Origin: Penicillus capitatus
Lineage: Eukaryota; Plantae; Chlorophyta
DNA length: 64,000 nt
Assembly: GCA_965649825.1 (NCBI GenBank)
Contig: OZ287705.1
Span: forward strand, 310,001-374,000
Direction of reading: 5' to 3'
The notes below the pieces were generated by a model that had not been told where the DNA came from, searched no databases, and worked only from the letters and a program-made list of their open reading frames with translations. The position numbers and the translations under genes were made by a program. Of this stretch, positions 6,339 to 36,836 are shown in pieces (positions within the stretch are counted from its first letter, which is position 1; the number at the start of each line of letters is the position of its first letter).

Positions 6339-8727
6339 CTCCAGTGAAATGTCGTTGTCGAGAACCAGCCGCCAGGACCACTCCTCGGGAAAAACGTTAT
6401 TGGCGGAAGGTGGCTGGCGATTAAGTAACTGCCGCGCAGATAACGGGTTAGAGGCGGGTTAATGCGGCGCGCCGACGTACATTCTGTGGCGCGTGTGGTT
6501 TCTTCGAAGAATTGGGTGTGGGCGGAAGAAGGCGTTCCTGACTGCCGGCCTTTTTCTTCTCTGCGACGGTTTGATGTATGCACCTTTCCACGGAGATGTC
6601 CATCGAGTGCTGTTTTTGTTTCGCAGCGAGAAACAGCCAGGCGGAATATGCGAAGCGAATCTGACGAAAAGAGATGGATATTAGGGGGCGCCCTTTTTCA
6701 AGCGAGTTCTCATGCAAACGTCACATCTCCGCCAGCGACAACCTCCGGCGCGAGGTCTTTGAGACGGGAGACGAATAATGTGTCCGTTCTGTCTTCTAAA
6801 AGTCACCCGGGGAGACCGTTTTCTGTGAGCAGGGATGTATGCCCGTGTCTGGATTTCTAAGCCTCTGCGTTTCTTCCTTCAGCGATGCGCCACCATTACG
6901 CCGCTGTCTGCTGCAAGCCTTGCTCGCGGAGGTGAATGCGTCCGCATCGCCTCTTCACTTGTCGTAGAGACTCTCTCCGGGGACGGGTGGCTTTAAATGA
7001 TACACAGTGGATTGGATCGTCTGTACGGAACGGCTACATCACACGACAGGAACTGACTGTACGATTCCGTAATGCGTTCACGATACTCGTTTTTAACTGG
7101 GTTCATACACCAAACATGGCTTGGCGGTATCCAAGAGGCCTAAGGTCCGACTCTTCAGAAGAGCGAATCTAGATACCATGCCGAGTGAAGCACACCAGAC
7201 CGTCGCCGGCCGCAGTTGCTGCTTTACAGGCAACGCAATACGCTCGCACGAATCTCGTTTAGAGGATTAGGAAGCAAGCACGCAATGTGGCCTTCGTCGT
7301 TTGTTTCTCCGCCGGAAGCAGGCCGGCACACAGTTCATGAATAGACAAGTGATCAGATTCTCTAGCTTTGCGGCGGCGGAATCGAAGAGGCGGCGCATAC
7401 GTGTGGTTGGATTGCGCTTCTATGCCTTTCCGCTGACTATTGAGCCCGTCGCATCTGCCAACGGGCGCCAGACAGAAGTTGTACGAGCTCTCCACGTTGT
7501 CAACCTCAATCTTCATCTATCTCTTAAGTGGCGTTCACCGTTTGCATCTCGTGTGCGGCAATGTAGATGAATGGATGCATTGATTATCGAAATCAAGTGT
7601 TTTCGAGACAGGCACGACGCTTTTCGTTCGTATAACGCCACGTGTCTATCATCCCTTTCGCAGGCCTGTCCGCAGCTCCTTTTCCATCGAACGCGTGACA
7701 GTCAGCTGTCACGTCACCGCCAAAAACTTTCTACTATCGCCTCAAATTTTTTCAGGCTATACTAACGCGACACGTGCCATTCACTGCCAACAGAATTGCT
7801 GTGCATAGAACGAGGCCTTAATCATCGGATCTGATTTCTTAGAATGCTTTTCGGCGGTAACACACTTTGCCTGCCTCTTTACACTCGGCTAGTCTATCTG
7901 CGCAGTCTATCGATGAAGGTCCATCGTCGATGACTGGCGATTGACCGGTTTGGTAGAGATCTGCACAAGCATCACGTGGCATCTGAGATCCGGGCGCCTC
8001 AAGGATGCAAGGTGTCTCGAAAGAGGGAGGCAGCAGCACTCGTCCTCCTCCATGTCTGTCATCTGGCTCGTCGTGAACGACGTAAGGGCAACGTTCGATT
8101 CCAGATGGTTTGAGAAGACAAGCCTACCCCGTCAGTGCCACTCAATTGTCCCCTGCGTAGCAAGTGGACCCTGTCCGGCAACTGTTCCAGGATGAACGAT
8201 CATCGGCACCAGCGGTCACATCATCAAATCTCTAGCCAAAACGACGGAATATACGTCTGCTGAATGCTTCCTCGTGAAGTCTGTGTTCTTCGCGCACGCC
8301 GCCCGAAGCAGTTTCATCCGGTCGGGAGGAAAGAAACCACAGCGCTTTTCAATTTCGCGGCTGCGACAGGACGCCGATGACGGAGTCACGTAAACGAGGC
8401 GCCGCAGCTTCGTTCTTGACCTTCACAGTGAAGGTCCTTTTGATTCAGTAGTGTAAAAAGCGGGTGCGTGCCACGCAGCAGCTAGCTATGCGCTGTCCTT
8501 CTTCAAACGCCTTTTTTGATTGGTCCAGCGTTCGCCGCGTCGCAGAACTGCGCAACGATGCTTCACTGTCATACAATACAAATTCACCCTCCTATCGTCA
8601 CTTTGTTCTCCACACAACTATAAAAGCAACAAGCTTTAGGGTTTTCTCACCGAAGTCCTTCTTACCGCCGTTGTTTCAGTCTTCTGTCCTGTTCTTAGTG
8701 TCTGTTCTGTCCACTCAACTGAACGCC

Positions 8728-9639
8728 ATGCCGGCGATCGCCGACGCCACGAGTGAGCACGTCACATCTGAAGACTCGCCCCTCGTCAACGTGTCTGTCT
8801 TCGTAGGCGGCGCCCCTGACATAAGCGACGAGTTCGCCGCTTTAGACGTTCCGTCCTTACTCAGCCAAGAGCAAGCGCACGGCGCCGGCTCTTTATCAAG
8901 TCACGATGCGGATACCTCCCGATGCCTTCGCCGCTGCCCGCGTCCCGTCCCGTCGACGCCGATTTTCCAGACATCCAGTCCAAGACCGCCACCGTCAGCG
9001 CCGCGTCAGCGGATAGACAGTCGTATCGCATGCCGCTCTCCATACCACAGTGAATTTCTCAGCGAACTTGAGGAGACGTTCACAGACGGAGACAACACAC
9101 GTGGCAGCGACAGCATCGACGTCGCTGCGGGCCTGCCATACGACGTCAGCGTCAAGTCTTTGCACCCACGTCCAGATGGCGCACCGACTGAAGAATGCGC
9201 CACGTCTTGTGAGCTCTGCTCGGAGCTCGCTATCGACGAACTCGCGAAGGACGCTGCCGAAGCTCCATTTCCATCTGTGGATGTTTTTGATGACCGCTTA
9301 ATCATCACCAAAGTACACCGCACCGCCAGCGGGCGATGGCTCGGCGGAGTCGTATCTGTGATGACGTTTGCTGACGTGGTACGGGAAGCGAGACGCAGTG
9401 AAAACGCGGCGCCGCCACGCCGAGTCTTTCCATCCTTTCGTACCGGCTGTCAACCGAGCGCATCCAGACGTTATGGCACGGAGATCGATCCGATCGACAA
9501 CGGGCGTCGATATACATGTCCTTGCCTTTTGTGCCTGCATAAGCGCCTTCCGCAGTCCGTTCGAATAACGCTGCGCTGTATGCTTCGTGGATTCCGGCAG
9601 AACATGTCGCCCGTCTGGAGATCTGGCAAAAATGCTTGA
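8728..9639 (+). CDS. Hypothetical protein with an acidic, low-complexity N-terminus; probably spliced
   Basis: Long ORF (8464-9639) with a plausible ATG at 8728 after an AT-richer upstream stretch. No family recognised. Confidence 0.4.
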   Translation: MPAIADATSEHVTSEDSPLVNVSVFVGGAPDISDEFAALDVPSLLSQEQAHGAGSLSSHDADTSRCLRRCPRPVPSTPIFQTSSPRPPPSAPRQRIDSRIACRSPYHSEFLSELEETFTDGDNTRGSDSIDVAAGLPYDVSVKSLHPRPDGAPTEECATSCELCSELAIDELAKDAAEAPFPSVDVFDDRLIITKVHRTASGRWLGGVVSVMTFADVVREARRSENAAPPRRVFPSFRTGCQPSASRRYGTEIDPIDNGRRYTCPCLLCLHKRLPQSVRITLRCMLRGFRQNMSPVWRSGKNA

Positions 9640-16025: not shown

Positions 16026-18887
16026 TCACATCTGCAGCAGCCGTAGCTGGTGCGAGTGACACGACCGGCGATTCCGCCCATCCAGTGTTTCGACCTCGAT
16101 GATATGCGGAGTGATAACAGCGCGGACGCGCCATCCCGACTCCCACTGGGCCGCTAGCTTATGTGCTGGCCGCGGCACCATGATTGCGACCTTGTCTCCA
16201 ACTCGCAGGTTTCTTCTCGTCGGGATGGTCCGCTCGTGTCTTGCTCTTCGCTTCCGCCGTTGGTCGTCCGAACGCTTCCATGCTCTTCCTTGGACTCTGT
16301 CCAGTTCCTCCTTCTGGAGCCGCGTACCATCGGCTCGTTTGCCCGTCATGACGAGACTCGGAGCGTATCCAAGCGCAGAGTGCCATGATTCGTTATACGC
16401 CTTCTCGATACGTTGGAGGAGTGACGGCCATGGCGCACTTGGGCCTTCTCTTCGGATTCGACCCAGGATGGTGCCAATTGCTCGCTCGGCCATTCCATTG
16501 CTCCAGTGAGCATAGGCAGGAGACAGTGCCATCTTCACGTGGCGCCGGCTGCAATACTCTTCGAAGTCGATGGATACAAAAGCTGCGCCTTGGTCACTTA
16601 CGAGCCGGCGAGGGGGCCCGAAGTGATATATCCATTTACGCAGTCCCGCCTTCGCGGCCTCGGCCGTCGGCCCTGCTGAAGCTGTGAGCATGACGTAGCG
16701 GCTGAATCCGTCTATCATGAGAAACACGTGCACGTTGTCTTCCTCCTTTTCCCAGTGTATGGGTCCGAGAAAATCACAAAAGACCGTGTCGTTTGGGCAG
16801 GGGCAATCCCACGAGCCCCAGACGGGTCGCTGAATGGGTCGTCCGTAGGCCTGACATTGCCTGCATCCTTGGACGAACTGTCGGACATGTGTTCTCATCC
16901 CTGGCCAATCCGCTCCCGTTGCTTTGAGGTTCCTCAGCGTTGTCTGCCAGTTGAAGTGCCCTTCGTGAGCCTTCTTGATCTGCCTCAGCTGGCCTCGTGT
17001 CGGGCCCGCCGTTGCCTGAGACACCTCGGCTGCGCCCTTTCCCTTACGGGGTCTGGATAAGAGGTCCGCGCCTTGGTTTTCTGCCCCGGGAACGAATTCG
17101 ACAATGAAGTTTTCGTTTCCTAGGAGCCATCCCAGTAGGCGCAGTACTCGCTTGTCCTTGAGACTTGGCGTGCTGGTGCTCAGTTGCTCGGCGACCGCTT
17201 GGTTGTCCGTCCGGATGAGCAAAGGAAAGTCCCCTCGCAACGGCTTTGTTGCTTGACAGGCCCACACGATTGCCTTGAGTTCCCCGAGGAAAGATGAAGT
17301 CACTTCCGGCACACTCTTGCTCCCGAGGTCGACGAGGTGCTCGTGGTTTGACCCTTTGGCCCACAGCAGATATCCCGCGTGCTCTCCGGACCAATCCGTC
17401 TCGAGAATGTATTGCGTCGTCCGGAGACCAGGCAGTTCGAGCAATACCTGTCGATCGAGGGCTCGCAGAAGCACCTCCCAGACTTCCCGTCGGGCTCGGT
17501 CCCACCACTTGCCGTCTTGTTTTCTTGCCTTGGCTTCTGCTAGCAGCTGTCGGAGGGGCGCTATCAATCTCTCGAGGTCCACAATGGTTCGCCTCAGATA
17601 GGAGAGCACTCCGATGAGGCGCTCAAGATCTTTCCAGTGCGTCACCTTTCCGAGTTGGGTCCAGCGACTGCGGAAGTAGTCTGTCAGCGTCCACGACCCA
17701 TGCGACAGTTCCATCCCCAGGAACTTGACTTTCGTCAGCAGGAGCTCGGTCTTCGCGAGGTTGACCTTGAGCCCGAACTCCTGGAAGCGAGCAAAGATGC
17801 TGCGGACGCGGTCACAGAGTTCTTCTGGGGTAGTACCACCGACAAGGAGGTCGTCGGCATACTGCACTGCGCCGAGCCCCTGTACAATCTCTGCTACCCG
17901 TTCCGCGAAGAGGATCGGACTCCATGACCATCCCTGCGGCAGGCGCTTCCAGGCGTAACGGCGGTCCTGCCAAGTGAACGCGAATGCAGACTGCAGCTCT
18001 GGGCACACCGGGATGGCGAAGAAACCATCCTTGAGGTCCAGCTTCGCAAAGTACCTCCATGCCGGGTCTACATCCCACAGCCGCCGCCAGACGTCGATCT
18101 GGGTCATTCCATGTTTCTTGAAGTGAGCGTTCAACCAACGAAAGTCGTTGGTGAACCTGTAGCTCCCATCCTTCTTTGGGATGGGGTACAGGGGGCTTAG
18201 AGCCACTCGCTCACCCATGGAGACCTGTCGGAGATAGCCGCGCTGAACATAGTGCTCAAGCTGTTCGGCTATCTTGCGTCGGTCGGCGACCTGCTCTGTC
18301 TTGTATGATGTGCGCAACCCTTGCTCTCTGGGTGGTGTCCAGCAGACTTCGTCGGCTCTGACCTGGAGGGGCTCCATTGCGGGCACGATGGGGTGCCGGC
18401 TTAGGTCGCTGACGTCAGGAAAACGACGCGCTAGCTCGTTTCGCAGGGACTCGGCAAGGGTGTCAACGGCGACTGAGCCGATCTTGGCTAGCCGGACTAC
18501 CTCAATGCTGCTGTGTCCGTGCAAAGAAACGAGGGGCGTGGTCGGAGTGACTCGAATCACTCTTTCTGACGTATTGTAGACCTCACATCGTACCATTCCT
18601 CCAGAGGTTACTACTACTCCAGATAGAACCTCGGGTCGCTGAAAACAGCTAGCTATGGTGACGCCGCCTTCTACTTCTAGCTTCCACGGGAGGTACCAGC
18701 GTTCCCAAGTCCTTGGCGGCAAGAATCTTGGCTTTCCACTTTGCAGCTGGACTCCCTTTGGAGTGACTGAGATTCCCGTTCCGTCCTTGATCTCCCATTG
18801 CTGGTGCACGCGAACAGTGCCGCCCCTCCCGTGGCTTTTGGAGGGGGCAGTTAGTTTGGGTGGTGCGCTGCTTGCACTGCCGCGCAC
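16026..18887 (-). CDS. pol: Gypsy Pol: dUTPase-like remnant, RT, RNase H, integrase with GPY/F-like tail
   Basis: RT motifs: PIPKKDGSYRF, LDLKDGFF, LPQGW, YADD (17850-17861). RNase H: ETD..GELKA..RTDN. Integrase: H-x3-H...CRQC, CDF, SDQG, NGMAE. Confidence 0.95.
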   Translation of the reverse strand: MRGSASSAPPKLTAPSKSHGRGGTVRVHQQWEIKDGTGISVTPKGVQLQSGKPRFLPPRTWERWYLPWKLEVEGGVTIASCFQRPEVLSGVVVTSGGMVRCEVYNTSERVIRVTPTTPLVSLHGHSSIEVVRLAKIGSVAVDTLAESLRNELARRFPDVSDLSRHPIVPAMEPLQVRADEVCWTPPREQGLRTSYKTEQVADRRKIAEQLEHYVQRGYLRQVSMGERVALSPLYPIPKKDGSYRFTNDFRWLNAHFKKHGMTQIDVWRRLWDVDPAWRYFAKLDLKDGFFAIPVCPELQSAFAFTWQDRRYAWKRLPQGWSWSPILFAERVAEIVQGLGAVQYADDLLVGGTTPEELCDRVRSIFARFQEFGLKVNLAKTELLLTKVKFLGMELSHGSWTLTDYFRSRWTQLGKVTHWKDLERLIGVLSYLRRTIVDLERLIAPLRQLLAEAKARKQDGKWWDRARREVWEVLLRALDRQVLLELPGLRTTQYILETDWSGEHAGYLLWAKGSNHEHLVDLGSKSVPEVTSSFLGELKAIVWACQATKPLRGDFPLLIRTDNQAVAEQLSTSTPSLKDKRVLRLLGWLLGNENFIVEFVPGAENQGADLLSRPRKGKGAAEVSQATAGPTRGQLRQIKKAHEGHFNWQTTLRNLKATGADWPGMRTHVRQFVQGCRQCQAYGRPIQRPVWGSWDCPCPNDTVFCDFLGPIHWEKEEDNVHVFLMIDGFSRYVMLTASAGPTAEAAKAGLRKWIYHFGPPRRLVSDQGAAFVSIDFEEYCSRRHVKMALSPAYAHWSNGMAERAIGTILGRIRREGPSAPWPSLLQRIEKAYNESWHSALGYAPSLVMTGKRADGTRLQKEELDRVQGRAWKRSDDQRRKRRARHERTIPTRRNLRVGDKVAIMVPRPAHKLAAQWESGWRVRAVITPHIIEVETLDGRNRRSCHSHQLRLLQM
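18822..18860 (-). promoter_or_regulatory. -1 programmed ribosomal frameshift signal (gag-pro to pol)
   Basis: The heptamer C-CCA-AAC (18860-18854) lies in the ORF1 frame just before TAA. After a 5-nt spacer comes a GC-rich hairpin (18848-18822). Pol is in the -1 frame. Confidence 0.85.
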
Positions 18888-21800
18888 ATAACCGAGCGCC
18901 CGTCCGGGGCCACGAGTCGGTTTCCCGCGAAATCCAAACTCCAGCCGAAATCTCGCAGAGCGTTTACGCCAACGATTGGGTGTTCAGGCCCGTCCACCAC
19001 GAGAAACGGCACTTGTCTTGTCTCTCCGCCAATGTCCACTGGGAGGCCCACTCGGCCTCGAACCTGGGTTGTCACACCGTTGAATGCTTGGACTTCCATG
19101 GGCTCAGGGAGGGGCTGTATCTCCCAACCACCTTGTATGCAGCGTTCCGTGGGCATCACGCACACGGAGGAGCCCGAATCCACGAGCATCTGGACTGGAC
19201 TAGCCCCCTCAGCCAGCTTGGCGCGTACGTAGTAGAGACGCGATGGGTCACTACTTGTGGCGGCGTCCCATACCGCTGCCACTGGTGGCCTGTCGCTTGG
19301 TCCCTCGTCGGGCGCTCGTTGCTGTTCTTCCGGGACGTGCACCACTTGCTGCCAGAAGTGTGGGCATTCTCCGGTTGCGTGATCTCGGGCGTTGCAGTTT
19401 GCGCAACGTCTTGGTGGCGGAAGCCGCGAGGCCTGCATAGCCGGTACGGCGGGCCTACCCATTCGTGGCGTCCTTGATGGTCCGGGAGAGGGAGGTCTGG
19501 GCATTGTCGGCCTGATCATGGGCGGGGGCTGTCCTCTTGCGGCGGCTGCCTGTCGTTCTTCTACGCGATGGAGTCGATCCAGTATGCTTTCGATACTCCC
19601 TAGGCCTTGGAGAACGACAGGATGCGGGGCCTGCGGGAGCTCGTCGGCTTCTCCGTCACTGGCTGGTCGGTCTTCCCATGCGACGAAAGGCCTAGCAGCT
19701 TGCTGTGGCTGTCCTTCGTCCGAGTTGTATCCCGTTCCCCTGCCTCCGCGCCCTCGACCGCGTCCTCGGCGCCCTTGATTTCTCCCACGTCCTTGGTGGC
19801 TTCTTCCTTGACCTCTTCCTTCGCGGGTTCCTCGCGGGACGGTGGGGGAGGGGGCCGCTGGTGGTGCCGGTGGCGGTGCTGTCATGTTGGCTTCCTGACG
19901 TGGTGCCGCTGGAGGTGCTGGCGGCGGTGCCACGTTGGCTTCCTGACGGGGTGCCGCATTTTGTTGTGCTGGCTGCGTCGCTGGCTGCTGTCCGCTTCGC
20001 TGTTGTTCCCTCTGCTGGTTTTGATGAGCGGCAGCTGTCCGAGCCCTGCGAGGTCTTTGCGGTGGCGGCACCGGGATTGGTTGTGTTCGCTGTTGCGAGA
20101 CGAAGCTTCCGATAAAGAGCAGTGGCTGGACAACGAGCCAGTAAGCGACCCAAAAAGGGAAGTAAAGGACCGCAGCAGTGCCCCACGTCAGGCTGTAAAT
20201 ACTGCGCATGGTGTCCTGTCCGAGATCGACGACCGAGTGAACTCCGTCGGCGATCCTCTTGACCACGGTGGCGACCAGAGCTAACGTCATGAGGATTCCT
20301 ACCAAGGCCAGCACGAGCAGGATCAGTCCGAGGTTTTGATTGCTTCCGGCGGCCCTAACGCTGAGGAGGGCCTGGAGGCCGTCGACCATGTTCGGACTTA
20401 TGACGAACCGAAGCAGACCCACCGCCCAGTGCGCTGGGCTCACGACAAACCCATACCATCCTGCAGCCCATGCGCCCCACGTTCTTGTAGGTGGCGCCTG
20501 GACCGAGCGAGTAAAGGTGGCTATCATATCTGCGCTTGCCGCAAGCTTCCTGGTTTGCTCAAGAACGGTTGGCATGAGTTCTCGGACTGCCCCCAGCTCA
20601 CCCTGCAGTTGCCCCTTGATTGCGTTCACGCCGTCTTGTGCTGCCCTAGCGATGGCTCGGTCGATGACTTGGAGTACTTCCCATCCTTTTTCGTCAGCTT
20701 CGTCCGTCATTTGTCGAGCCATTTGTAGGATGCTGAGATTGATCTGGTTGACGGCGCGGGTCGTCCCCGTGAGGAAGGACGTGGTTCCAGCCTCAGCTGA
20801 CGACGGGGGTGCCAATGTAAACTTGTGGTGCCAGGCTGAGCCGGTAACCCGTCGCCGGTGCATTCTCGTCAGGGCTTGCTCATAGTGTTCTTTCAGCTTG
20901 TCCATCTGTTCCCTGGCGAGCTGTCCGCGTCGTTCGGCCTTCTCTCCCCAACGCCTGGAGAATTCGAGGGCGTCGTTGGCTATGTCCACCAGTGATCGAT
21001 TCTGATACATACGCGGGCTCACTCCCAGGTATCCAGCATAAATTTCCTTGGCGGCTTCCTGGAACGCGGCGTGTAGGACCTTTTCGTCTAGGTCGAAGAT
21101 GAGCGGTTGACACTCTGTGCGCCAGCCATACAATGTGGGCATCCAGGTCTTTACCAGTCGCTCGCCCAGGGGGCAATTCGCGAGGTCTTCGACTTTAGTT
21201 GCGAACGCAGAGAACTGGCGCTCAATGCGTTCCTCCATCGTATATGGCATGCCGAACATCCGGATGGCTGCCACATGCATGACTGGAAAGAGGCATAGGT
21301 ATACGAAAAAGGTAATCCACAGAATCGTGCTTGTCTTTCGCCGTCCCCGGGGCCTTGGGTTGTCTCCTTCGGAGGGACCTTCGTCAGGTCGCTCTGGCAG
21401 CTCATCCCTCCCGAGGTCTTGCAGCGCGTTGTATGCTTTCGTGGCGTTTTCCGACAGCCACTTCCCCAAGCGTGCGAACCAGTCATACTTGTAAGCGCAT
21501 GTGAGGAGGACGACTAGTGCAATGAATGCCGCGGTACGCAGGGTGCTGCCCCAAGCCCAATCCCAGAAGATGCCGAAGACGCAGAGAATGGTAGCGCCAA
21601 TAGCAAGCTCTTCCACACGAGGGCCTCTCCCTTCGGGTACGGGTGATGGTCTGGCCCGAGGTCGTGGATGCGGGCCGTGCTCCAGCGCTCTTCGACGGGC
21701 TTCTTCGGCGAGTCGTTGCTGCTCTGGGTCGGCTAGAATCTCTGAAGCGGTTCTCTGAACGTCGCGACTCGACCCCGCTCCGAAACCATGTGAAGATTCA

Positions 21801-21916
21801 TCTTTCCCGGCCTTCTTGCCGACCTCCGTCACGATGTCTTCCGCCCTTACTTTGTGGACGGGTGGTGGCGGCACGCTCGGCAGGACCGGGCCTTCGACGT
21901 CTCCGGAATGACTCAT
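18851..21916 (-). CDS. gag: Gypsy ORF1 (1021 aa): multi-TM Gag-like protein, CCHC zinc knuckle and aspartic protease
   Basis: CANCNARDHATGEC (CX2CX4HX4C) and LVDSG are present, with several long hydrophobic segments in the N-terminal ~610 aa. The ATG lies inside the 5' LTR. Confidence 0.9.
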   Translation of the reverse strand: MSHSGDVEGPVLPSVPPPPVHKVRAEDIVTEVGKKAGKDESSHGFGAGSSRDVQRTASEILADPEQQRLAEEARRRALEHGPHPRPRARPSPVPEGRGPRVEELAIGATILCVFGIFWDWAWGSTLRTAAFIALVVLLTCAYKYDWFARLGKWLSENATKAYNALQDLGRDELPERPDEGPSEGDNPRPRGRRKTSTILWITFFVYLCLFPVMHVAAIRMFGMPYTMEERIERQFSAFATKVEDLANCPLGERLVKTWMPTLYGWRTECQPLIFDLDEKVLHAAFQEAAKEIYAGYLGVSPRMYQNRSLVDIANDALEFSRRWGEKAERRGQLAREQMDKLKEHYEQALTRMHRRRVTGSAWHHKFTLAPPSSAEAGTTSFLTGTTRAVNQINLSILQMARQMTDEADEKGWEVLQVIDRAIARAAQDGVNAIKGQLQGELGAVRELMPTVLEQTRKLAASADMIATFTRSVQAPPTRTWGAWAAGWYGFVVSPAHWAVGLLRFVISPNMVDGLQALLSVRAAGSNQNLGLILLVLALVGILMTLALVATVVKRIADGVHSVVDLGQDTMRSIYSLTWGTAAVLYFPFWVAYWLVVQPLLFIGSFVSQQRTQPIPVPPPQRPRRARTAAAHQNQQREQQRSGQQPATQPAQQNAAPRQEANVAPPPAPPAAPRQEANMTAPPPAPPAAPSPTVPRGTREGRGQGRSHQGRGRNQGRRGRGRGRGGRGTGYNSDEGQPQQAARPFVAWEDRPASDGEADELPQAPHPVVLQGLGSIESILDRLHRVEERQAAAARGQPPPMIRPTMPRPPSPGPSRTPRMGRPAVPAMQASRLPPPRRCANCNARDHATGECPHFWQQVVHVPEEQQRAPDEGPSDRPPVAAVWDAATSSDPSRLYYVRAKLAEGASPVQMLVDSGSSVCVMPTERCIQGGWEIQPLPEPMEVQAFNGVTTQVRGRVGLPVDIGGETRQVPFLVVDGPEHPIVGVNALRDFGWSLDFAGNRLVAPDGRSVMCAAVQAAHHPN
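21776..21788 (-). other. Gypsy primer-binding site TGGTTTCGGAGCG (degenerate tRNA-iMet type)
   Basis: Abuts the 5' LTR and matches 10 of 12 positions of the plant-type iMet PBS TGGTATCAGAGC (recalled; the host tRNA is not in this window). Confidence 0.8.
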
Positions 21917-26814: not shown

Positions 26815-29800
26815 ATGCGCATGATAAGAAACGGACTGGCTGTCGCTGGTGCCATCCTCTTTCTCCTTGTCTGGGCCGTCGTCAGTCAAACGCCGATCGC
26901 AGGTAATTCCTGACATTCACGAGCAGACGAGCATTCCTTCATGACACAAAGTCCTTTCTCGGCTTGGACCCTCGTCGCGCATCGCATCTTTTCTGCTCGT
27001 CTTCCGTTCGCTTCTTTGTATCTGTGGATACGTCGTCGACTGCGTCTGTGTGCAGACTCGAGATGCAAACTCCCTGAAGACGTTAAAGAAGAACTCCGCG
27101 TCGGTGAAGATCGGACATGGCGTATCACCGAAGCGCTCCAAGAACAGCACGGCATTCAGCAAATCATCGATTGCGCAGAACAAGGCGACGTCGTATCGCT
27201 GGATACTTCGCTGGCGATTCGACCGTCGACGAGAATCGTGATTCAGCGCGATGTGACCATAGTGGGAGGCCAGCGACTCGGCGGACGATCTCCGACGAAG
27301 CGAACTGCGTTCATCTGCCCTCCAGACAAAGGACTGTTTCTTCTGAAGTGCGTCTCGCCTGTCTTCCGCTTCACAAACACACTGTGGACTGCAGAAGCGG
27401 CTTCTCCTTGGTCAACGTTGTTATTAAAGACTGCCATCTGACCGAGGAGCACAAAGTCGCGGCCATCATCGAAGCGGACTCCTGCCAGCAGTCATCTTTT
27501 GTGAGGCCCAAAGTGTATCTTTCCAACGTGCAGTTCCAAAACAACACGAATCGCGGCGGATCTGCGGGTCTCGTCGTGCAAGGTCCGTCGTGTGACGGCG
27601 TGGTCGAACTGCTCGACGTCGCATTCAAGGAGAACGTGTATTCCAAAGCATCCGTGTTGGCGAGAGAGAACACTTTGACGGACGTTCGAGTTGTCGGCAA
27701 TCGAAGAATTGCTAACAACAACCAGGAGACGTCTTTCTTTTGCCTTCCCGACAATTCCTCATCAAAGGTGACGAAAATGACGGCGAAGGACAACGCGAAT
27801 GCGGGCGTTCTTTACGTCGAACGGGGGGAGCTGAACGTTTCGTCCTCTCTCTTCCAGAACAACGCCGGAAAATGGAACGCGGTCGTCGAGACTTTGTCGT
27901 CTTCGCTGATCGTGCGTGAAACGCGTTTTCTCGACAATTCCTGCAAGTGCCGCGCCGTGGCAGTCTTCGGACATCAACCACTGTCGTTTGACTTTTCGTC
28001 TTGTACTTTCGCTGGCAACGTCGCTGACGGCAAGGACAGTGGCGTTGTCTATGCGACGAATCCGCGCGTCCTGCGTTTTTTCCTATGCGATTTCGTCGAC
28101 AACGTCATACGCAGTTCGAATGGAAGGACGGTTGCGTTAGATGGGCTTGACTCGGAGACAAAGGAGGAAGGGCGAGAGATCACGACGGTCGTGGAATTCC
28201 TCCGCTGTCGGTTTTTGAGAAACGCGGCTGCCTATGTGACGGCCGTGCGCCTTTATGAAGTCCGCGCACGAACAGTTTTCTTCCATTCCTGTCACGTGCA
28301 GAACAACACGACACCGGACGATTCCCCTGTGCATCGACAGACAGTGGTCCTTGTGAAGGATAGTTTTCTGCACAATCTCACGATGGCGAACTGCACGTTC
28401 GAATCGAACGACTGCACTCGACATGTGCTGTCGCTCTTCTCCGCCAATGGCACGTTCTGGATCCGAAACACCTCCTTCGCCGACAACAGAACTCCTCAGG
28501 CTGGGCAAGGGAGCACGCTGAATGTACAGAGAAGAACAGTGAGCAACGAGCACTTGTTGGCGCAGAGCGCCTCTGACAATGGAGCCGTCCTCAGTGTGGA
28601 AGATTCAGAGTTCCGAAGAAATGGTGGCGACTTGGCTGGCGGCGCCGTGCATGTGGCAGATGAACAAACGCGGGTGGAGCTGCTCGACAGTCGATTCCTG
28701 GATAATCGCGCTGAGAAGGGCGGGGCGGTTTTCGTAGAGAATGCTCGCTTAGTGGATATCGACAACTGCACTTTCGCGCGGAATAGTGCCACAGATGTTG
28801 GCGGAGCGATACGTCTGCAGAGTGGTAGCGCAGAAATCCGGAAGTGCACTTTCGTTGAGAACACGGGCGAGCACGGCGGTGCGATCGATACCATGACGAA
28901 CATCCTGGTCCAGGACTCAGAGTTCTTCGGAAACAAGGCCAGCATCAGAGGAGGCGCCATGAGTATCAGATGCCTAGAATCTTTTCCTTGCAAGCCACGC
29001 ATTCTCGGATCCGCATTCTGGCGAAATCGAGCAGGCAGATCTGGCGGCGCTCTCCACGTGTACGCGAGCGGAACGTTGCCACTAGAGAACTGTCGTTTCA
29101 TCGAGAACAATGCGACATATGGTGGAGGCATTTCGCTGTTCCGTGTGCGGAAGAGTGCGGGGTGGTACATAACGAACTCGAATTTCTCTCGGAATAGTGC
29201 AGCGACAGGAGGTAAGGCACGAGATCCTTCCTCGTTCAAATCTAACTGGGCTGCCTTGATCGCAGGAGCGATTTCGATAATGGACAGTGCGGAAGAGCAA
29301 TCCTCGAATCGGTCGCAGAACGACGTTGCCGGGAGGTTCTACTTCAGCGGCACCGTCATCACGCAGAACACCGCGACGCTGTCGGGCGCCGGCATCTTCG
29401 CCGAAGATCCATCTCTCCTCAGCATCGACGGGTCATCGGTAAACGTGCCAGAGAAAACGTTCAACTGCCAAACCATGGAGACACCGCCGAGCAGTGCTCT
29501 CGGGAAGATTTTTCGAAACAATACTGTCGTCGGAGGACACGAAGAGAATCTGGCAAGTTTGCCTGTCGGCTTCTGCGTCTCTGTCTTCAAAGGAGGTCGA
29601 CTGGCAGACACCATCTCGGAAGACAGTACGTACGTGCTGCCTCGGTGGCGAAGCGGCGACGATTTCCCAGTCCTGCGCGTGATGATGTACGACCCTTTTG
29701 CGAACATCTTTGCGCATACCAGGAATCGAGACTGCAAGAGAGGGACGACGTCCGTCGACGAGCCAGAGGAGGCGTACGAGCAGCCCGTCAATGCAGTGCT

Positions 29801-31952
29801 GTTTTCAGAAGCGGAAGATGCGTCTATGGGCCGCTTCTTGATGAACAGCGTGTACGAAGACATCTCCTCCGGCGGCGGTAACATATCCGTGGGCAATCCC
29901 TACGTCAAACCAGGACGTTATCGACTCACACTGCTGGTTGAGGGATTCGAGCAACAGAACGTGACGCTGGAAGTCCACGTCCGCGACTGCACCATCGACG
30001 AAGAGTCCGACCGCGACGACACATTCTGTCGTCCTTGTGACTCGAACCAATACAACTTCCAATCGGCAGGCTTGGCGTGGAAGTGCACACTCTGTCCAGA
30101 GAACGCCGACTGCACGACGGAGTTCATACTCCCGAGAAAAGGTTTCTGGAACGCGTTTCCGTGCTCCAACCAGATGGAGCGATGCGTCTACAAAGACGCG
30201 TGCAACTTCACTGGATCGGACAAACTGGCGGCGCTGACCGAGTTTGAAACGCCTTGCGTCTTCAGCGACGACGCCATCGAGCAGTACCAATCCAGTGAGT
30301 GCGCCGAGGAGTACGAGGGTCCGCTGTGCGGGTCCTGTCTTGACGACGCAGGCCGACTGGGAAGCTTCGTCTGCGCGCCCTGTATGTCGGAGTTTCTTTC
30401 CGTCGTCGGGCTTCTTGGCCTTCTGGTTCTCCAGTTGATCCTCGCCCTCTTGCCGATGCGAGAGACACTGAACGCCGAGCGCGATCATCAGGAGGACAGA
30501 ATGACGGCTTTGAGTTTTATGCGACGAACGAGAAGAGCGACACGTCCCCCTGGAAGATACGAATTCGCTGGCGGCGGGCGGAGTTCTCGAGTGAGAACCG
30601 CGATCGTGCGAACTGGAACGACGACGATCCGCTCGAACGCCCGCAAAGCGAGCAGAGCCAAGCAATGTTTTCTTGGAACGTTAAAGGTAACCCTGTCCTC
30701 CGGACGGCGGTCGAATCTCAGTCCTGTCTTATAGATCACTATCAATTTTCTCCAAACAGTGGCTATTGCAGCCTCGTTGGACGTCTCGTGGAACTTCACC
30801 GCCATCTCTTTCTTCAGAACCTGGGGTAAGTAATCGTACTCGAAGAAAGAACGTTTCTATGCAAACTGCGCCTTTTCAGATTCTATGAGCGCTGCTGCCT
30901 CCGTCGGGGCTTCGTTGTTTCTGGACTGTTTGCTCTCCGGCAAAAGTGGAGCTCCACGAACTGTCAAGCGCCAGATCATCGTTGCACTGCTACCAGAGAT
31001 CGTCGCCCTCGTCATTTCGTTGTTCTTTCTTCTGAGAGAGCTAAAGGGGGACAAGGACTGGAACAGACTCCTCAGAAGAGCCATCCTGGCCCACATCGTC
31101 GTCGGCTACAACTCTTATCTCGTACTGGTAAAGGTCGCCATCGATGCATTCAACTGCGTCCGCGTGCACGATGGCATCCGTCTCGAAGACATCGGCATGA
31201 CGCATCGCTACTGGATCGCAGACACGTCTGTGGAGTGCTTCAGCAGCACCCATCTGAACTTCACTCTTGCCGTCTCCGTCCCACTGCTTCTCTTCGCCAT
31301 CCTGTTTCCACTTCTGCTGGTCATTCTTCTGGAACGCGCTCGTGGACAAAACAAGCTCTCGTCCAAGTGGACGCAGGAGACGATGGGATTCCTGTTTATC
31401 GTTTTCGAGGAGAACTACGTCTACTGGGATTGTCTGATCCTCTTGCGAAAGGCCATTCTCTCGGTCATCATCGTCTTCGCCTACAGACTCGGAGGCAATC
31501 TCCAAGGTCTTCTCGTAATGGCCGTCCTCGTCATCGCTCTCTTTGTGCAAACGTATCTCGGTCCTTTCAAAAAGGAACTGGTCAGTTTGAACGTACTGGA
31601 AAGCGTTTCCCTTCTGGTGAGTTTCTTTACTTTTATGTGTGGACTCATTCTGAACAACGAGAGATTTCACGGTGTCCTCATGAAGGGACTCGTCACGGCA
31701 CTGCTGCTCAGCAGCAACGTCGGACTTTTTGTCATTCTCGTTTTCTTCTTGGCGCGAAGCAAGTTGGAACAAGTCAGATTGGAACTTAAGATGATGCAAG
31801 CTGATGCCGGCAACGGGTCTCTTCACCAAATCGCATGGTCTTATCTGACATTCCAGATTGCACGTCTCCGGGGACTGATTGATAAGCAGGACTCGGTCGA
31901 CGACGCGGAAGAGTTAGTTCCGCAACCATCCATTGAGCTTTCGGGGGTGTGA
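26815..31952 (+). CDS. Large cell-surface membrane protein: signal peptide, pectin-lyase-like beta-helix (Pmp-type GGA[IV]/FxxN repeats), Cys-rich region and multi-pass TM C-terminus
   Basis: Exon 1 (26815-26902) encodes MRMIRNGLAVAGAILFLLVWAVVSQ. Repeats of the form F..N.A..GGA[IV] and the Cys-rich CRPC..CTLCPENADC..GPLCGSC follow, then a hydrophobic ORF at 30885-31952. GT-AG introns include 27348-27394. Confidence 0.85.
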
Positions 31953-32919
31953 ACAGCAACTGCTATTCTCCTGTCTCACAAACAAGCGTTTCACAGCGTC
32001 TTTCTTTGCAAATATTCTTTCTCTTCTGCACATTCGTTTGTGTAGCGAACTGAAAGAGCGTTGCTGCTCGATCACGAGTTGCATATTATGGTCGTAAGGG
32101 GGGCGGTTATGGTCTACTGTTTCTTTGAATGGAAAACGTCGAAGATGTTGTGCAGCTTTCGTTGTAAACGGCGTTTGAGTGTTTGGTGTGTCTTTGCGTG
32201 TCTATTGGACGGCATCCATTTCGAAGGTATCCATTATTCAGGGTAGTCTACGCGAGCGGCATGCCGACTCACTGATTTTGATAACTGAAAACAGAATCTT
32301 CTACGCGCAAACAGATTCTGCCTGGACCTTGCAGTCAAGTCACGCATCGTCATAAAAGAAGCTTTCATCATCAGGCCATCCGCCAGCCTAGGAATCACCG
32401 CTGTCATTGCTGCCGACCGGCGAGCGACCTCAGACGCAAACTTCTTCACGACTAAGACAATCGCCAGTGGCGACAGGCAACCAAAAAACGTTCACCCGAG
32501 AGCGGTCTTCGGTACTCGGTAAGTACTCCGGAAAGCGGATAGCTTGAACTAACCCTCTTTGTCACAATGGCTTTTCAGCTGTCGCCTCAAACTCCGTTAA
32601 ATTGTAGGAAAGTCTCGCCGACAGAGCCAACAGAACGAACGACCTACGAGATCTTGTGTGGACTGTGGATTGTCTAGCAGAACGGTGAGTGATACTGTCG
32701 CCGTCTTCAACACTCAAGGACGTAGCTGTCGAGACGAAGCGTGAATGTTTTACATTCTTGTCATCATATTCTGTTGTAAGAACATAAAGGCAGTAAATAG
32801 TTTAGCTTTCGGAGCTGCTGGTTAGTTACAACGCTAGTAAACTTATCTACACAATCTAAAAACGCAAGTACGAAAACTGATACGTCAAAAGACGTGGTCT
32901 TTCGGTGACATCAGCGTCG

Positions 32920-33003
32920 TGGCTAGGGTGACTGCTCAGTCGAGTGACCGAACAGTTTCGACGGCGCCACCCGTCTCATCAGACCCCTTGAGAGTTTTTG
33001 CCG
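32920..33003 (-). ncRNA. Type I hammerhead ribozyme HH1; predicted cleavage between 32930 and 32929
   Basis: Minus strand: ggggt-CUGAUGA-gacgg(gtggcg)ccgtc-GAA-actgttcggtc(actc)gactgagcagt-C-accc. The core is complete, stem III has 11 bp, the triplet is GUC, and stem I is accc/gggt. Confidence 0.9.
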
Positions 33004-33087
33004 ATTTAGCGCTATCCAGTCCCGCCACGAGGAGGCACGGCTCGACGATGCGTTGGCAAACGCACCGCCGTTGGGACCACAATATTT

Positions 33088-33552
33088 GGTGGTAATCACG
33101 AAATGAAATGCCATTTTATGGGATAATCACGAAAGTGCCTTGGGTAATCACGAAATGAAATGCCATTTTTTGGGATAATCACGAAAGTGCCTTGGGTAAT
33201 CACGAAATGAAATGCCATTTTTGTTTTTTCTTTTTTTTTTTTTTTGTTTTTTCTTTTTTTTCTTTTTTGATTTTTTGGGGTAATCACGAAATGAAATGCC
33301 ATTTTTTGGGGTAATCACGAAATGAAATGCCATTCCTTGGGGTGGTAATCACGAAATGAAATGCCATTCCTTGGGGTGGTAATCACGAAATGAAATGCCA
33401 TTCCTTGGGGTGGTAATCACGAAATGAAATGCCATTCCTTGGGGTGGTAATCACGAAATGAAATGCCATTCCTTGGGGTGGTAATCACGAAATGAAATGC
33501 CATTCCTTGGGGTGGTAATCACGAAATGAAATGCCATTTTGGGGTAATCACG
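33088..33552. repeat. 34-bp minisatellite (ggtaatcacgaaatgaaatgccattccttggggt), about 7 near-perfect units plus variant units and a T-rich insert
   Basis: The 34-nt period is readable from 33311 onward. Variant units occupy 33088-33310. Confidence 0.95.
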
Positions 33553-34125
33553 AGGATGTCCTTCCTTCCGGGATTCCTCAACCAGGTCGAAGGGAAGGCC
33601 GCCTACAAGGGACGACCCTCACCCCGCCTTCGGGACTAACGGGTGGGCCCGACGCCGTAGAAGCCGCTCAACAGTCCGCGCCACAACCGTCGCACGATTG
33701 CCGCCATCGACGGCAGCGTCTCATGCGCTGTGTGAAAGGTTCTTTATCGACGGACAACCGAACGACGAGTTCGACGTAGTGGGACCGGAGCTGCGCAACT
33801 GTGGGGGAGTATCTCCCGGAAAGAAGGGCCATCCGAGGATGTCCCCCCAATCCGAGATTCCTCAACCAGGTCGAAGCAAAGGCCGCCTACAGGAGACGAC
33901 CCTCACCCCGCCTTCGGGACTAACGGGTGGGCCCGACGCCGCAGAAGCCGCTCAACGGCCCCCGCCACAACCGCCGCACGATTGCCGCCGTTCTCGGCAG
34001 CGTCTCATGCGCTGTGGTAAGGTCTTCGATAGTACAATACTTCAATATGACGGACAACCGAACGACGCGTTCGACGCATCCGGACTGGAGCTGCGCAACT
34101 ACGGGGGAGTATCTCCCGGAAAGAA
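33552..34125. repeat. Two diverged ~283-bp tandem units (starting at 33552 and 33835)
   Basis: Both units share gaggatgtcc...gattcctcaaccaggtcgaag...cttcgggactaacgggtgggcccgacgcc...gggggagtatctcccggaaagaa. Confidence 0.9.
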
Positions 34126-34151
34126 AGACGAAAAATGGTACGCGTCATCAC

Positions 34152-34470
34152 TTATATACCCCTTCAGATGATGTGACAGCGTCACATCGTTTTGTCGCGC
34201 AATCAGCCAATCACGACGCGAATTCGGAATACTAACCGTCGGAAGAAGAAGCTGGAAGGAAGACGTCGATGCAGCCGATAGCCAATCACGTTGCAGTATC
34301 GGAATATTCCATCTGTCACATCAGAATATTCCATCTGTCACGTCAGAATAATCCATCTCCATCTGTCACATCGGTTTCTCGTCGATTCAGCCACTCAGCG
34401 CGCATCTTTGGCAGTCTAACCGTCCTCAAGGTGACGTTGACAGGGTCGCGTCAACGTCCAAGTATTTAAG
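34152..34470. promoter_or_regulatory. Candidate divergent Pol II promoter
   Basis: TATATAA on the minus strand (34152-34158) and TATTTAA on the plus strand (34463-34469). Two agccaatca CCAAT boxes (~34205, ~34280) and several GTCACA motifs lie between them. The same TATTTAA occurs in both LTR families. Confidence 0.55.
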
Positions 34471-34928
34471 GGGCTCCGCGACGCGCATTTCGTCTTTTGT
34501 CGTTAGGGCGGTTCTACTGGTGGGTTCTCGCTCCCGGGTTTCGGCTCGGAACACAGAACGCCAAAAACCGGGCCAGTGCTGCCAGGCTATAAGCCGCCGA
34601 CCCGGCCCGTCGGTGTTGCGAGGCGCCCCTTCGGGAGGTGCTGCTGACCATCACCTTCCCGCCGCGGTTGGCGCGTGCAAAGGTCGTTAGACGCTGGATT
34701 CGGAGTGTCTAAGGCGTGTTGCGAGGCATCACTTAGGTGGCGCTGCTGACCTCCACACCTGGCTCCGAACTTTGCGCTCCGCCGCACGCTTAAGACATAC
34801 GGCTCCACTGCGCTAATGCCACGCCGCCTTCGGGTGACGCGTCACTGGTTCAGTGGGGAGGGTGGGCTTGGGGTTATCCTAGCCAATCCGGATCTTTCCG
34901 GATCCCGTCGAGGGTTTTGGTGCCTCGA

Positions 34929-34986
34929 CGTGAAGGGGTCTGACGAGACGGGTGGCGCCGTCGAAACCCTTAGGTCTTTTGTTTAC
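34929..34986 (+). ncRNA. Minimal hammerhead HH2; predicted cleavage after 34976, with a weak stem I
   Basis: CUGACGA-gacgg(gtggcg)ccgtc-GAA-acc(ctta)ggt-C. Stem I is mostly G-U pairs with a U-U mismatch next to the core. Confidence 0.65.
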
Positions 34987-35151
34987 GTGTCTCCATACCG
35001 CGCGCGCTCGATTTACGCGTTCCATTCTCGCTCTCCGTGTCGGAGCTCGGCCGATGTCAGACGCATGAGTAGATCTGCCGCCACCATACGCCGCATCACG
35101 GTTCTTCTGCGTCGAACGCGTCGCTGCTGCGTTCTGGATCGTGCCGAGTCG

Positions 35152-35230
35152 TGGCAAATGGGTCTGACGAGACGGGTGGCGCCGTCGAAACCGCAGAGTG
35201 CTTCGTTGCATTCGGTGGTCACCCTAGCCA
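35152..35230 (+). ncRNA. Type I hammerhead ribozyme HH3; predicted cleavage after 35220
   Basis: tggc-aaat-gggt-CUGACGA-gacgg(gtggcg)ccgtc-GAA-accgcagagtgc(ttcgtt)gcattcggtggt-C-accc-ta-gcca. All three stems form, and stem I has an internal loop. Confidence 0.9.
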
Positions 35231-36836
35231 GTCGTTTTTACTTTTTTGCCTCTCTACTGCTTATTTTCCATCCATCTGTCGGTCTTCAAGCGTCAACGCT
35301 GAAAACCCTAACAGCCGACGACAATACGATCTACGTGTATATGAGCGCTCCCTACGTTTTTAAAGCCTTGCAAAGCAAACGAAAGCACCACTGCGCTGTG
35401 TCTCTTATGCGTCCGTCCGCCTGTGAAGTGGTCAAACCCTAGTTTGTTTATTGTAAATGCAAACCTGGAGCCGATGCATTTTTGAAGAGGAGTACTACTG
35501 GAAAGTAGACTTCTGCCTCTGTCTGGTCCAGAGTGACAGAGCCTTCCTCTGGTTTTCTGAAGGATGGATTTTTCAAATTTTCCTTGTGACAGCAAAGGTC
35601 ATGACAGAAACAGACAATCAGCACATCGACCTTGGCGTTCATCCAAACATCGACGAAGCGATACCACGTTGCAAGGGATAATGGGCCCGTAAAGCTTTCG
35701 AGGAACATTCTCGCAGCATGAACTGGCGATTCTCAAAGTTTGCCGTTGCATTGGTCGATTCCAACACCTGAGCTCTTCATTCGTTTTTTAACAAGAGTTC
35801 ACTCCCTCAGCACTGTCACCGTTTTCACGTCAAGAAACGTTCTAAACGCGCATCTTCGTTCTCCTCGCGTCGTCACACAGACAGAGATTGATCTCACGAG
35901 AACACACTCAAAGAATGGTGTTTGTGGCGAATACATAACACAGGCTTTTTGGTACAGAGCTGAGGTCGCAGCTCCCCTGCGTTCATGTCTCACTAGTTTT
36001 GAATAACTGACACACTCAGTGCGATGCTAACCGCCATTGAAAATGACGAAAACCAAATCGTCACTTTGTACAGGACAGGTCTTCTGCCTCGTTTCGCAGC
36101 TGAGTTTGTTGAGGACACGCCGACAGGCAGCAGTCTCTCGTCAACGCGGACTTCCAATAGAGAGTGGACGCGCACGGTGTAGAAATAGACGCATCCTTTT
36201 TACTTCACCAGACCTCCGCCGTCCATACCGGGTGCGTCGCGCGATGACAGAAACTGCTTCGAATCGGCAATGTCGACGCGGCCGGTCATGCTTACTAAGG
36301 ACGTGACTGATGCAAGCATCGTTCTTCTTAATCAATGTTTTCCCCGTTCGTGCTTAGTCTGTTGCATAAACAGGACAGGAAGTCAAGCAATCCACGGCCT
36401 TTTCCGCTGAACGTTCTTGCAAAGCGGACACCGTCTTTTCCGCTTTTCGTGAGCCTCCCTCCTCCAGCCACGACAATCATTGCATCTCGCGGCCCCATCA
36501 CTCTCTGTCGGCGTGCCGCATCCGACAAGACTGTCCACAAGACGGCCGATACCCTTGCCGCAGGAGATAGAAACCTCTCGCCGTCGACGCGAGTTCACTT
36601 TAGCACAGTAAGTGCGTCGAGCTTCTCTCTCACAGCAGGAACGGCTTCCTTTATCGCGGCGGTTTTGCCAAGGTTCTCAACAAGACTCGACAGTCGCGGC
36701 GTCTGACAACGGACAGACGAAGAAGCAAAACTCGGGACGGTGAAAGCAACACCTTCCGTCCTCGGAACGCCGACGGACTATTCAACCTTTTATCCCTCCC
36801 TCTGAGCAACAAAGCAGTCGGTCCTCAGGGAGTCGA

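Follow-up and report, generated by a model that had tools for sequence, protein, structure and literature searches.

A non-coding cassette with hammerhead motifs on opposite strands in Penicillus capitatus and its copies in two genomes

The window studied here, a stretch of 64,000 nucleotides from Penicillus capitatus (assembly GCA_965649825.1, contig OZ287705.1, positions 310,001 to 374,000 of the forward strand), was found to contain a non-coding cassette with three hammerhead ribozyme motifs, termed HH1, HH2 and HH3. The HH2 and HH3 motifs were part of a unit that points right, and this unit was joined at its left to an opposite-facing arm of ~160 nt ending in HH1. The window looked eukaryotic nuclear, and its gene density was not bacterial. 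Judged from the sequence, the region appears to be one genuine copy of a moderately repeated, non-coding family of hammerhead cassettes. A non-autonomous retroelement lineage of the retrozyme/Penelope-like sphere, or a fixed derivative of such a lineage, is tentatively favoured as its origin.

Hammerhead motifs and copies of the cassette

One hammerhead core was found on the minus strand and two on the plus strand (Table 1), against a chance expectation of 0.16 for the 64-kb window. The invariant core (CUGANGA, GAAA and the U-H cleavage dinucleotide with A15.1-U16.1) was present in all three motifs, and the stem II was the same in all of them. The helices I, II and III were of 5, 5 and 11 bp in HH1 and of 4, 5 and 5 (+6) bp in HH3, with helix I open and formed by the 5′ and 3′ ends. 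The stem I of HH3 contained GGGU/ACCC and UGGC/GCCA pairings, helix III was composed of 5+6 bp and C17 was unpaired; the minimum-energy fold of HH3 was the canonical type I hammerhead. A full descriptor, our own script demanding the invariant core and three helices, matched HH1 and HH3 only in the 64 kb and nothing in 200 simulated windows.

The helix III sequences of HH1 and HH3 were found to be unrelated, yet they were paired in both, and this is the best structural argument that the two motifs are ribozymes. HH1 and HH3 look like real hammerheads that face outward on opposite strands. The first-pass annotation had proposed this arrangement, together with a common stem II, an unrelated but paired helix III and cuts located 10 nt inside each boundary; the cores, the three helices, the full descriptor and the folds agreed with it, and the predicted cuts fell after C35220 on the plus strand and after C32930 on the minus strand. 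An alternative register of HH1 with a short helix III would place its cut after 32946.

The HH2 core and stem II were identical to those of HH3 and differed from those of HH1 only at the variable N7 position. The helix III of HH2 contained 3 bp, and its helix I was weak and rich in G-U pairs; HH2 failed the full descriptor on helix I. The HH2 and HH3 cores shared a segment of 36 nt, lay 224 nt apart and enclosed a sequence that was not repeated.

Copies of the cassette were searched with a spurious open reading frame (ORF) of 208 aa that runs across HH2 and HH3 (34816-35442). It was run against protein collections, and the contigs were then fetched. The ENA metagenome assemblies ERZ25074695 (genome 1) and ERZ26696514 (genome 2) were found to contain 10 further units at seven other loci, along with allelic copies of three loci, giving 11 units at eight independent loci with the window. 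Genome 1 contained L001, which is allelic or near-identical to the window, and the five loci L003, L007, L008, L009 and L011 (allele L012). Genome 2 contained L002 with one unit and L004 (allele L006) with the three units A, B and C. The two genomes, which come from related uncultured eukaryotes, share a 7-kb syntenic genic block (L010 and L002) with 86% identity. Among solved structures in the PDB, plant and green-algal chains were nearest to the mitochondrial uL30 encoded at L002, and the protein collection contained no named relative close to it. The window segment 32921-35253 was 86% identical to L003 and similarly related to L007, L009 and L011, and the flanks of the loci were unrelated. 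The absence of a credible ORF inside the cassette, noted in the first pass, was confirmed: the internal ORFs contained no Pfam domain, and their database "homologues" were translations of other copies of the same DNA.

The unit was joined at its left to the opposite-facing 160-nt HH1 arm in the window, in the full copies of genome 1 (L003, L007, L009 and L011) and in L004-C, so that further copies with both arms exist. The units of L008 and L002 had no left arm, L004 A and B were arranged head to head with their TATA boxes ~125 nt apart, and L009 contained two tandem cassettes at a contig end. These tandem cassettes occupied positions 1-5352 of the 128-kb contig ctg339543 and reached its end, which may reflect either a longer array that breaks the assembly or a position near the chromosome end; no telomere repeats were found in the L009 stretch examined. 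At 10150-10310 of L002, the sequence that follows HH2 (putative cleavage site and 3′ strand of stem I) was present five times in tandem with a period of 33 nt, and the same repeat was observed in the "proteins" P0025 and P0027 from other loci. Neither the exact ribozyme core nor a 22-mer that is invariant in the HH1 arm was matched in scans of JGI metagenomes.

One haplotype per locus yielded 27 hammerhead instances, seven of the HH1 type, 11 of the HH2 type and nine of the HH3 type. The CUGANGA and GAAA nucleotides were intact in 26 of the 27 (HH1 type 7/7, HH2 type 10/11, HH3 type 9/9). Between subfamilies the HH2 core with stem II was conserved at 93-98% identity and the promoter-like motif at 81-88%, followed by the spacer at 51-56% and the RNA body at 43-47%, and the spacing of the HH2 and HH3 cores across copies ranged from 172 to 240 nt. 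In an alignment of eight HH3-type copies, 92.7% of the pair cells were standard-paired against 31-54% in slid controls; the changes in this alignment were one-sided, and double changes of a compensatory kind were not found.

The most conserved part of the cassette was the block of ~160 nt formed by HH1 and the adjoining 33004-33078. It was identical (100%) in the allele L001, and the window segment 32921-33078 was 93% identical to L006 of the second species, to which the HH2/HH3 unit was ~68-74% identical. The consensus fold of the HH1 arm contained a compact two-hairpin domain followed by the ribozyme, with no compensatory changes. The idea that the left arm is a diverged inverted copy of the right arm was tried by local alignment and discarded, as 136 and 324 of 1000 shuffles scored as high.

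Modules of the cassette and its surroundings

Every HH2/HH3 unit was found to contain, in the same order, CCAAT-like boxes, an upstream element and a TATA-like box, followed by a variable body, a 3′ domain, HH2, a spacer, HH3 and a T-rich tail. The positions of these modules and of the neighbouring features are collected in Table 1.

Table 1. Features of the cassette and its neighbourhood, numbered by position in the window
Feature	Position	Strand	Description
Ty3/Gypsy retrotransposon	16026-21916	-	aspartyl protease ORF 18851-21916; reverse transcriptase, RNase H and integrase ORF 16026-18887
1205-aa beta-helix repeat gene	27117-30734		followed by a 350-aa multi-pass membrane-protein ORF
Stretch outside left arm	32861-32919	-	short GC hairpin, then T-rich, read outward; holds the proposed target-site duplication at 32916-32919
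HH1	32920-33003	-	full type I hammerhead; core 32955-32982
5′ domain of HH1 arm	33004-33078	-	two hairpins closed by a GGUCCC/GGGACU stem
Tandem repeats	33091-33545		periods of 52 nt (x2.5) and 34 nt (x8), surrounding a T-rich run of 59 nt (33218-33276)
Segment of ~284 nt, present twice in direct orientation	33551-34125		one copy in L004-C (7268-7499)
Promoter-like region	34131-34490	+	CCAAT-like boxes 34204-34213 and 34280-34288; 22-nt repeats 34298-34358
Variable 5′ body of predicted non-coding transcript	34495-34810	+	presumed start ~34495, from the TATA position
3′ domain	34811-34930	+	G-tract motif 34855-34873; AUCCUAGCC 34876-34884; hairpins 34887-34902 and 34906-34930
HH2	34931-34990	+	minimal type I hammerhead; core 34940-34967; putative cut after C34976
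HH2-HH3 spacer	34977-35150	+	with HH3, a 244-nt RNA (34977-35220) between the two predicted cuts
HH3	35151-35230	+	full type I hammerhead; core 35164-35191; predicted cut after C35220
Stretch outside right arm	35231-35447	+	T-runs 35231-35260 (with the right copy of the proposed duplication); CCATCCATC 35268-35276

The stretch outside the left arm was homologous in L003, L004, L007, L011 and both cassettes of L009, with the alignment starting at 32861 for L004 and at 32879 for L009 and L011. The tandem repeats were present in the genome-1 copies and missing from L004-C, and the allele L001 differed from the window in the number of repeats (227 gap columns). No promoter motif was visible for the HH1 arm, no direct long repeats bounding the unit were found in the window, and the 64 kb contained no further copy of the cassette.

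The promoter-like region also contained an upstream element at 34443-34455 followed by the TATA-like GTATTTAAGGGG at 34462-34473. The arrangement GTCACATC-N(6-14)-TATTTAAGG was found upstream of five HH2/HH3 units (L003; L004 A, B and C) and of allelic copies and nowhere else in the fetched loci. From these motifs the region 34131-34490 may act as a promoter. Between the window and L001 it was the most diverged part, with 86.7% identity against 97-100% elsewhere.

The variable body was 99% identical to that of the allele L001 and 89% identical to that of the paralogue L003, and 34495-34810 had no Pfam or Rfam match. The 3′ domain (~120 nt) was kept in every unit of both species, L002 included; read by eye, its second hairpin differs in sequence in L004 and L002 but is still paired. 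At the same place in every unit, just 5′ of HH2, four G-tracts (GGGG..GGG..GGG..GGGG) separated by variable loops were observed, which could form a G-quadruplex. The stretch outside the right arm contained GCGTCAAC...AAACCCTAAC...GAC at 35290-35319 with a telomere-repeat-like CCCTAA; this CCCTAA-like motif was located 73-82 nt past the end of the HH3 arm.

The Ty3/Gypsy retrotransposon had no similarity to the cassette. An exact look-up of the 1205-aa neighbour protein returned no record. The beta-helix/PMP-repeat gene and a 350-aa multi-pass membrane-protein ORF were found to adjoin the cassette in the window (27117-31952), and such a pair also adjoined the three-unit cluster of the second species (L004/L006; L006 9561-12492). 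A linkage of the cassette to this pair was considered and rejected, since protein identity is only 25-32% and the pair is missing from the other loci, which leaves coincidence or distant paralogy.

Other elements were observed near the copies. A non-coding element of ~250 bp, resembling a miniature inverted-repeat transposable element, was present at ~3056-3300 of L007 and ~5519-5765 of L008; as read by eye, it has apparent short terminal inverted repeats, a different 5-bp flanking duplication at each site and a ACCCTAGCC string, and in L008 it sits within the conserved tail right of HH3. L011 contained a 2.4-kb insertion (6630-9040) with an integrase-core (rve) ORF ~300 nt right of the cassette, which was missing in L012. 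A borderline tRNA match of 29.6 bits (gathering score 29) was found at 3386-3460 on the plus strand of L003, ~0.7 kb outside the HH1 arm.

Edges of the cassette and its possible origin

The first-pass annotation had read the region as a new class of element bounded at 32920 and 35230, with TG..CA ends, a 13-bp terminal inverted repeat (TIR) and a target-site duplication (TSD) of gtcg or gtcg(t). The gtcg pair is present in the window, but matching 4-mers were found in only one of six full copies: the 4 nt outside the left and right arms of the other five were TTTA/GTCG, TTGA/GTCG, ATCG/GTCG, TTCG/AAGA and ATTC/GTTA. The left 4-mer of the window was one substitution away from the ATCG of both L009 copies, and GTCGTT followed the right arm in four of five full genome-1 copies. 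The terminal A of the left arm, read earlier as the TG end, was occupied by C in three of seven copies.

The homology between copies was found to run beyond both of these boundaries, by 45-110 nt past the left arm and by 25-217 nt past the right arm. The left side contained ~45 nt with a short hairpin followed by T-rich sequence, common for up to ~110 nt. The right side contained GTCGTT and T-runs, followed by CCATCCATC and then by GCGTCGAC...AAACCCTAAC at +60 to +90, also in genome 2; the latter motif was common to L009 and L004 A, B and C and degenerate in L003 and L008. L009 shared 217 nt past the right arm with the window, to 35447, and the distance at which the outside homology ended varied among copy pairs. 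The conserved flanks, the unmatched 4-mers and the variable TG together indicate that it is the ribozymes, and not the repeat, that end at 32920 and 35230, that no TSD is present and that the gtcg match arose by chance. In the interspecies check for an empty site, the synteny of L010 and L002 ended 0.7 kb before the L002 unit and was not resumed within 10 kb; this abrupt stop (L002 8879, L010 15477) places the unit at a rearrangement breakpoint and not at a clean empty site.

A discrete mobile element of 2,311 bp at 32920-35230, with TG..CA ends, a 13-bp TIR and a 4-5-bp TSD made by DDE-type insertion, is very improbable. The window does contain an exact 13-nt inverted repeat (32920-32932 and 35218-35230), TG/CA and gtcg on both sides, and homology to L003, L006 and L007 begins on the left at 32921. 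However, the repeat is composed of GUC and the 3′ strand of stem I, which two opposite-facing ribozymes of one family necessarily share and which account for it fully, so that the repeat itself stands and its role as transposon ends does not. The flanking 4-mers matched in none of the five other full copies, the flanks were conserved and the terminal base was variable; by contrast, the ~250-bp element of L007 and L008 appears to have real TIRs and 5-bp duplications that differ from site to site. The first pass had also considered an integrated copy of a viroid-like or ambisense replicon. Such a DNA would derive from a circular RNA with its opening at the tip of a "hammerhead arm". Hammerheads of both polarities are present, and joining the ends would bring the two ribozymes into a single long hairpin, as in the hammerhead arm of some viroids. 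This origin is nevertheless highly improbable: the flanks outside the arms are conserved, a TATA-type motif and DNA tandem repeats lie inside, and three hammerheads of the same family occur with two on one strand. Without an ORF the cassette is not ambivirus-like, and a scan of IMG/VR with the ribozyme core gave no match. The folding was unexceptional, the HH2-HH3 fragment (z = +0.65) and a 479-nt transcript (z = -1.41) being no more stable than shuffles. Equally improbable is a solo long terminal repeat (LTR), or a retrozyme of the LTR type that the resident Ty3/Gypsy elements would have mobilised. The TG..CA ends and the 4-bp match of the window would suit it, Ty3/Gypsy elements occur in the window and near L003, and the LTRs of plant retrozymes carry hammerheads (PMC4918200). 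Against it, no direct long repeats flank the cassette, no TGG primer-binding start was seen beside either end, the other copies have no TSD, and no similarity to the rest of the window, the Gypsy element included, was found; the hammerheads here are of type I and those of plant retrozymes of type III (PMC7761336).

The newt satellite 2 and the Schistosoma Sm-alpha repeats are genomic repeats in which a small-RNA-type promoter is combined with a type I hammerhead. They are short tandem or SINE-like (short interspersed element-like) units with one ribozyme of weak helix III, whereas the cassette unit is of ~1 kb and contains two ribozyme types and an opposite-strand arm. Plant LTR retrozymes are non-autonomous elements without coding sequence; both of their terminal regions contain a hammerhead, and the promoter lies inside the repeat (PMC4918200, PMC9695139); their direct LTRs, type III hammerheads, primer-binding site, polypurine tract and 4-bp TSD were not found in the cassette. 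Animal non-LTR retrozymes are tandem repeats of ~150-400 bp with type I hammerheads and circular RNAs (PMC7229834, PMC7761336, bioRxiv 10.64898/2026.07.22.740005). The cassette resembles them in being non-coding and multi-copy with type I hammerheads, and its same-strand hammerheads, 172-240 nt apart, could release a small RNA with ligatable ends. It differs in that the HH2-HH3 interval is no tandem duplicate, the helices I and III differ, the host is not an animal and the unit has a long body, probably promoter-driven, with a hammerhead on the opposite strand.

The arrangement of the ribozymes is not without precedent, as the first pass had supposed. Insertions of Penelope-like elements are described in which an inverted, 5′-truncated copy places two 3′ ends back to back, the terminal repeats containing hammerheads (PMC8557442), and paired opposite-strand hammerheads 100-700 bp apart are known, along with protist and fungal type I hammerheads of large helix III (PMC4209133). 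A new class of TIR- and TSD-bounded element was not borne out, and hammerhead repeats with opposite-facing ribozymes are already described. The hammerheads of Penelope-like elements include minimal, helix-III-poor variants in tandem (PMC4209133, PMC7761336). The insertions often have a tandem or inverted adjacent copy and commonly a short terminal "tail" (PMC8557442, PMC11167929), and endonuclease-deficient clades contain telomere-complement repeats beside the hammerhead (PMC8557442). Non-autonomous derivatives of such elements are also described (PMC8557442; bioRxiv 10.64898/2026.07.22.740005). The pseudo-LTRs (pLTRs) of Penelope-like elements, especially of the endonuclease-deficient Coprina/Athena type of fungi and protists, contain type I hammerheads in terminal regions, as does the cassette. 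Unlike Penelope-like elements, the cassette had no reverse transcriptase or GIY-YIG ORF inside or in the flanking ORFs tested, no direct pLTR was seen, its arms were not copies of each other beyond the ribozyme and its TATA-type motif was external. Its CCCTAA-like motif was single, with no repeat tract, and only L009 was located at a contig end, with none of the copies shown to be telomeric.

The favoured origin, a non-autonomous retroelement lineage of the retrozyme/Penelope-like sphere or its fixed derivative, draws on canonical hammerheads with a very low chance expectation, on 27 instances in 11 units at eight loci of two species with the core intact in 26, and on dispersed copies with unrelated flanks. 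The conservation was modular, as in non-autonomous elements, being high in the promoter and the HH2 core and low in the body and the spacer. Arrangements resembling those of Penelope-like insertions were found in the head-to-head L004 A and B, the tandem L009 and the left-armless L008 and L002, and an inverted adjacent copy with a short terminal "tail" is likewise known from Penelope-like elements. A minimal hammerhead in tandem with a second one, the large helix III of the full hammerheads, the CCCTAA-like motif near the 3′ end and the lack of an ORF point in the same direction.

Several observations weigh against this origin and keep it tentative. As the search relied on an ORF that runs across HH2, the sample is biased to copies in which this region is kept. 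No TSD was found and the boundaries were fuzzy across copies. The cassette was present on both haplotypes in all three allelic pairs, while another element was polymorphic in one of them (L011/L012); with the closest paralogues 9-14% apart, there is no sign of recent movement. The arms had no similarity beyond the ribozyme, and the left arm can therefore not be read as a truncated version of the right arm. No Penelope-type reverse transcriptase was found in the flanking ORFs tested near the copies, and the reverse transcriptases nearby belonged to unrelated Ty3/Gypsy elements. The promoter-like motif lies upstream of the presumed start and would be missing from a simple RNA copy. The hammerhead models proposed as a check in the first pass gave no Rfam hammerhead family at the gathering score for the whole window or at E<=10 for 3.2 kb and for slices of 86-121 nt at HH3 and HH2, and six related loci yielded no Rfam hammerhead, with the borderline tRNA match as the only hit. 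No defining test places the family in a named group, as it has no reverse transcriptase, direct repeats, tandem unit, TSD or Rfam match, and the combination of a fixed module order, an external promoter motif and a strongly conserved opposite-strand arm is unusual.

Part of this evidence would suit a cellular multi-copy family of non-coding RNA (ncRNA) genes, which is a somewhat unlikely but serious alternative. The units would be RNA polymerase II-type, small-RNA-like genes with 3′ ends made by hammerheads and T-rich termination signals, the window would contain two such units back to back, and the copies would have arisen by DNA duplication and not by transposition. The external promoter motif at a fixed distance upstream of the checked units argues for it, as do the compact bidirectional arrangement of L004 A and B, the absence of presence/absence polymorphism in the three allelic pairs and the lack of a Penelope-type reverse transcriptase in the flanking ORFs tested near the copies. 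The promoter and ribozymes were intact in units that are ~50% diverged, among them L004 unit A and all HH1 arms, which were not selected by the query. The HH1 arm was 93% identical between species against 86% over the syntenic 7-kb genic block, and the flank homology lengthened with the similarity of the copies compared, a pattern like that left by segmental duplication. On the other side, no known cellular RNA family was matched in Rfam, the HH1 arm showed no visible promoter motif, the copies were repeat-like, lying at unrelated loci in tandem and inverted clusters, and the bodies of the units were unrelated, so that no single RNA product is conserved beyond the 3′ domain and the ribozymes. 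A cellular ncRNA family with hammerhead-made 3′ ends was not found in the literature searched. It is unlikely that the cassettes function as genes, cellular or domesticated, with the hammerheads as a built-in 3′-end and terminator module of TATA-driven ncRNA units.

Proposed working and biological meaning

In the working proposed for the cassette, the TATA-like box would drive rightward transcription from ~34495. The rightward RNA would contain the 3′ domain, followed by a possible HH2 cut after C34976 and an HH3 cut after C35220, and the T-rich tail would end transcription after HH3. On leftward transcripts, HH1 would cut after C32930. The products would be RNAs with defined 2′,3′-cyclic-phosphate 3′ ends, and a 244-nt HH2-to-HH3 fragment with ligatable ends may also be formed. 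The copies may have spread by way of RNA that was copied into DNA by a reverse transcriptase acting in trans. Transcription by RNA polymerase III was considered and thought unlikely because T-runs directly follow the presumed start site in several copies.

The family is unusually readable: two kinds of hammerhead follow a promoter-like motif, a variable body and a conserved 3′ domain in a fixed order, and the opposite-strand HH1 arm is more conserved between species than a neighbouring genic block. Its hammerhead variant is invisible to current annotation, since the Rfam models miss all 27 instances. Hammerheads are frequent in genomes, but what they do in Penelope-like elements is still described as unknown (PMC7761336). 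If the units are transcribed and cut as predicted, the in vivo job of the hammerhead, for a repeat or for a gene, would be to define the 3′ end. If the units are genes, the outward ribozymes would mark the unit boundaries on both strands, and the family would represent a ribozyme-based making of ncRNA 3′ ends, with insulation of the neighbouring genes, that is conserved across species.

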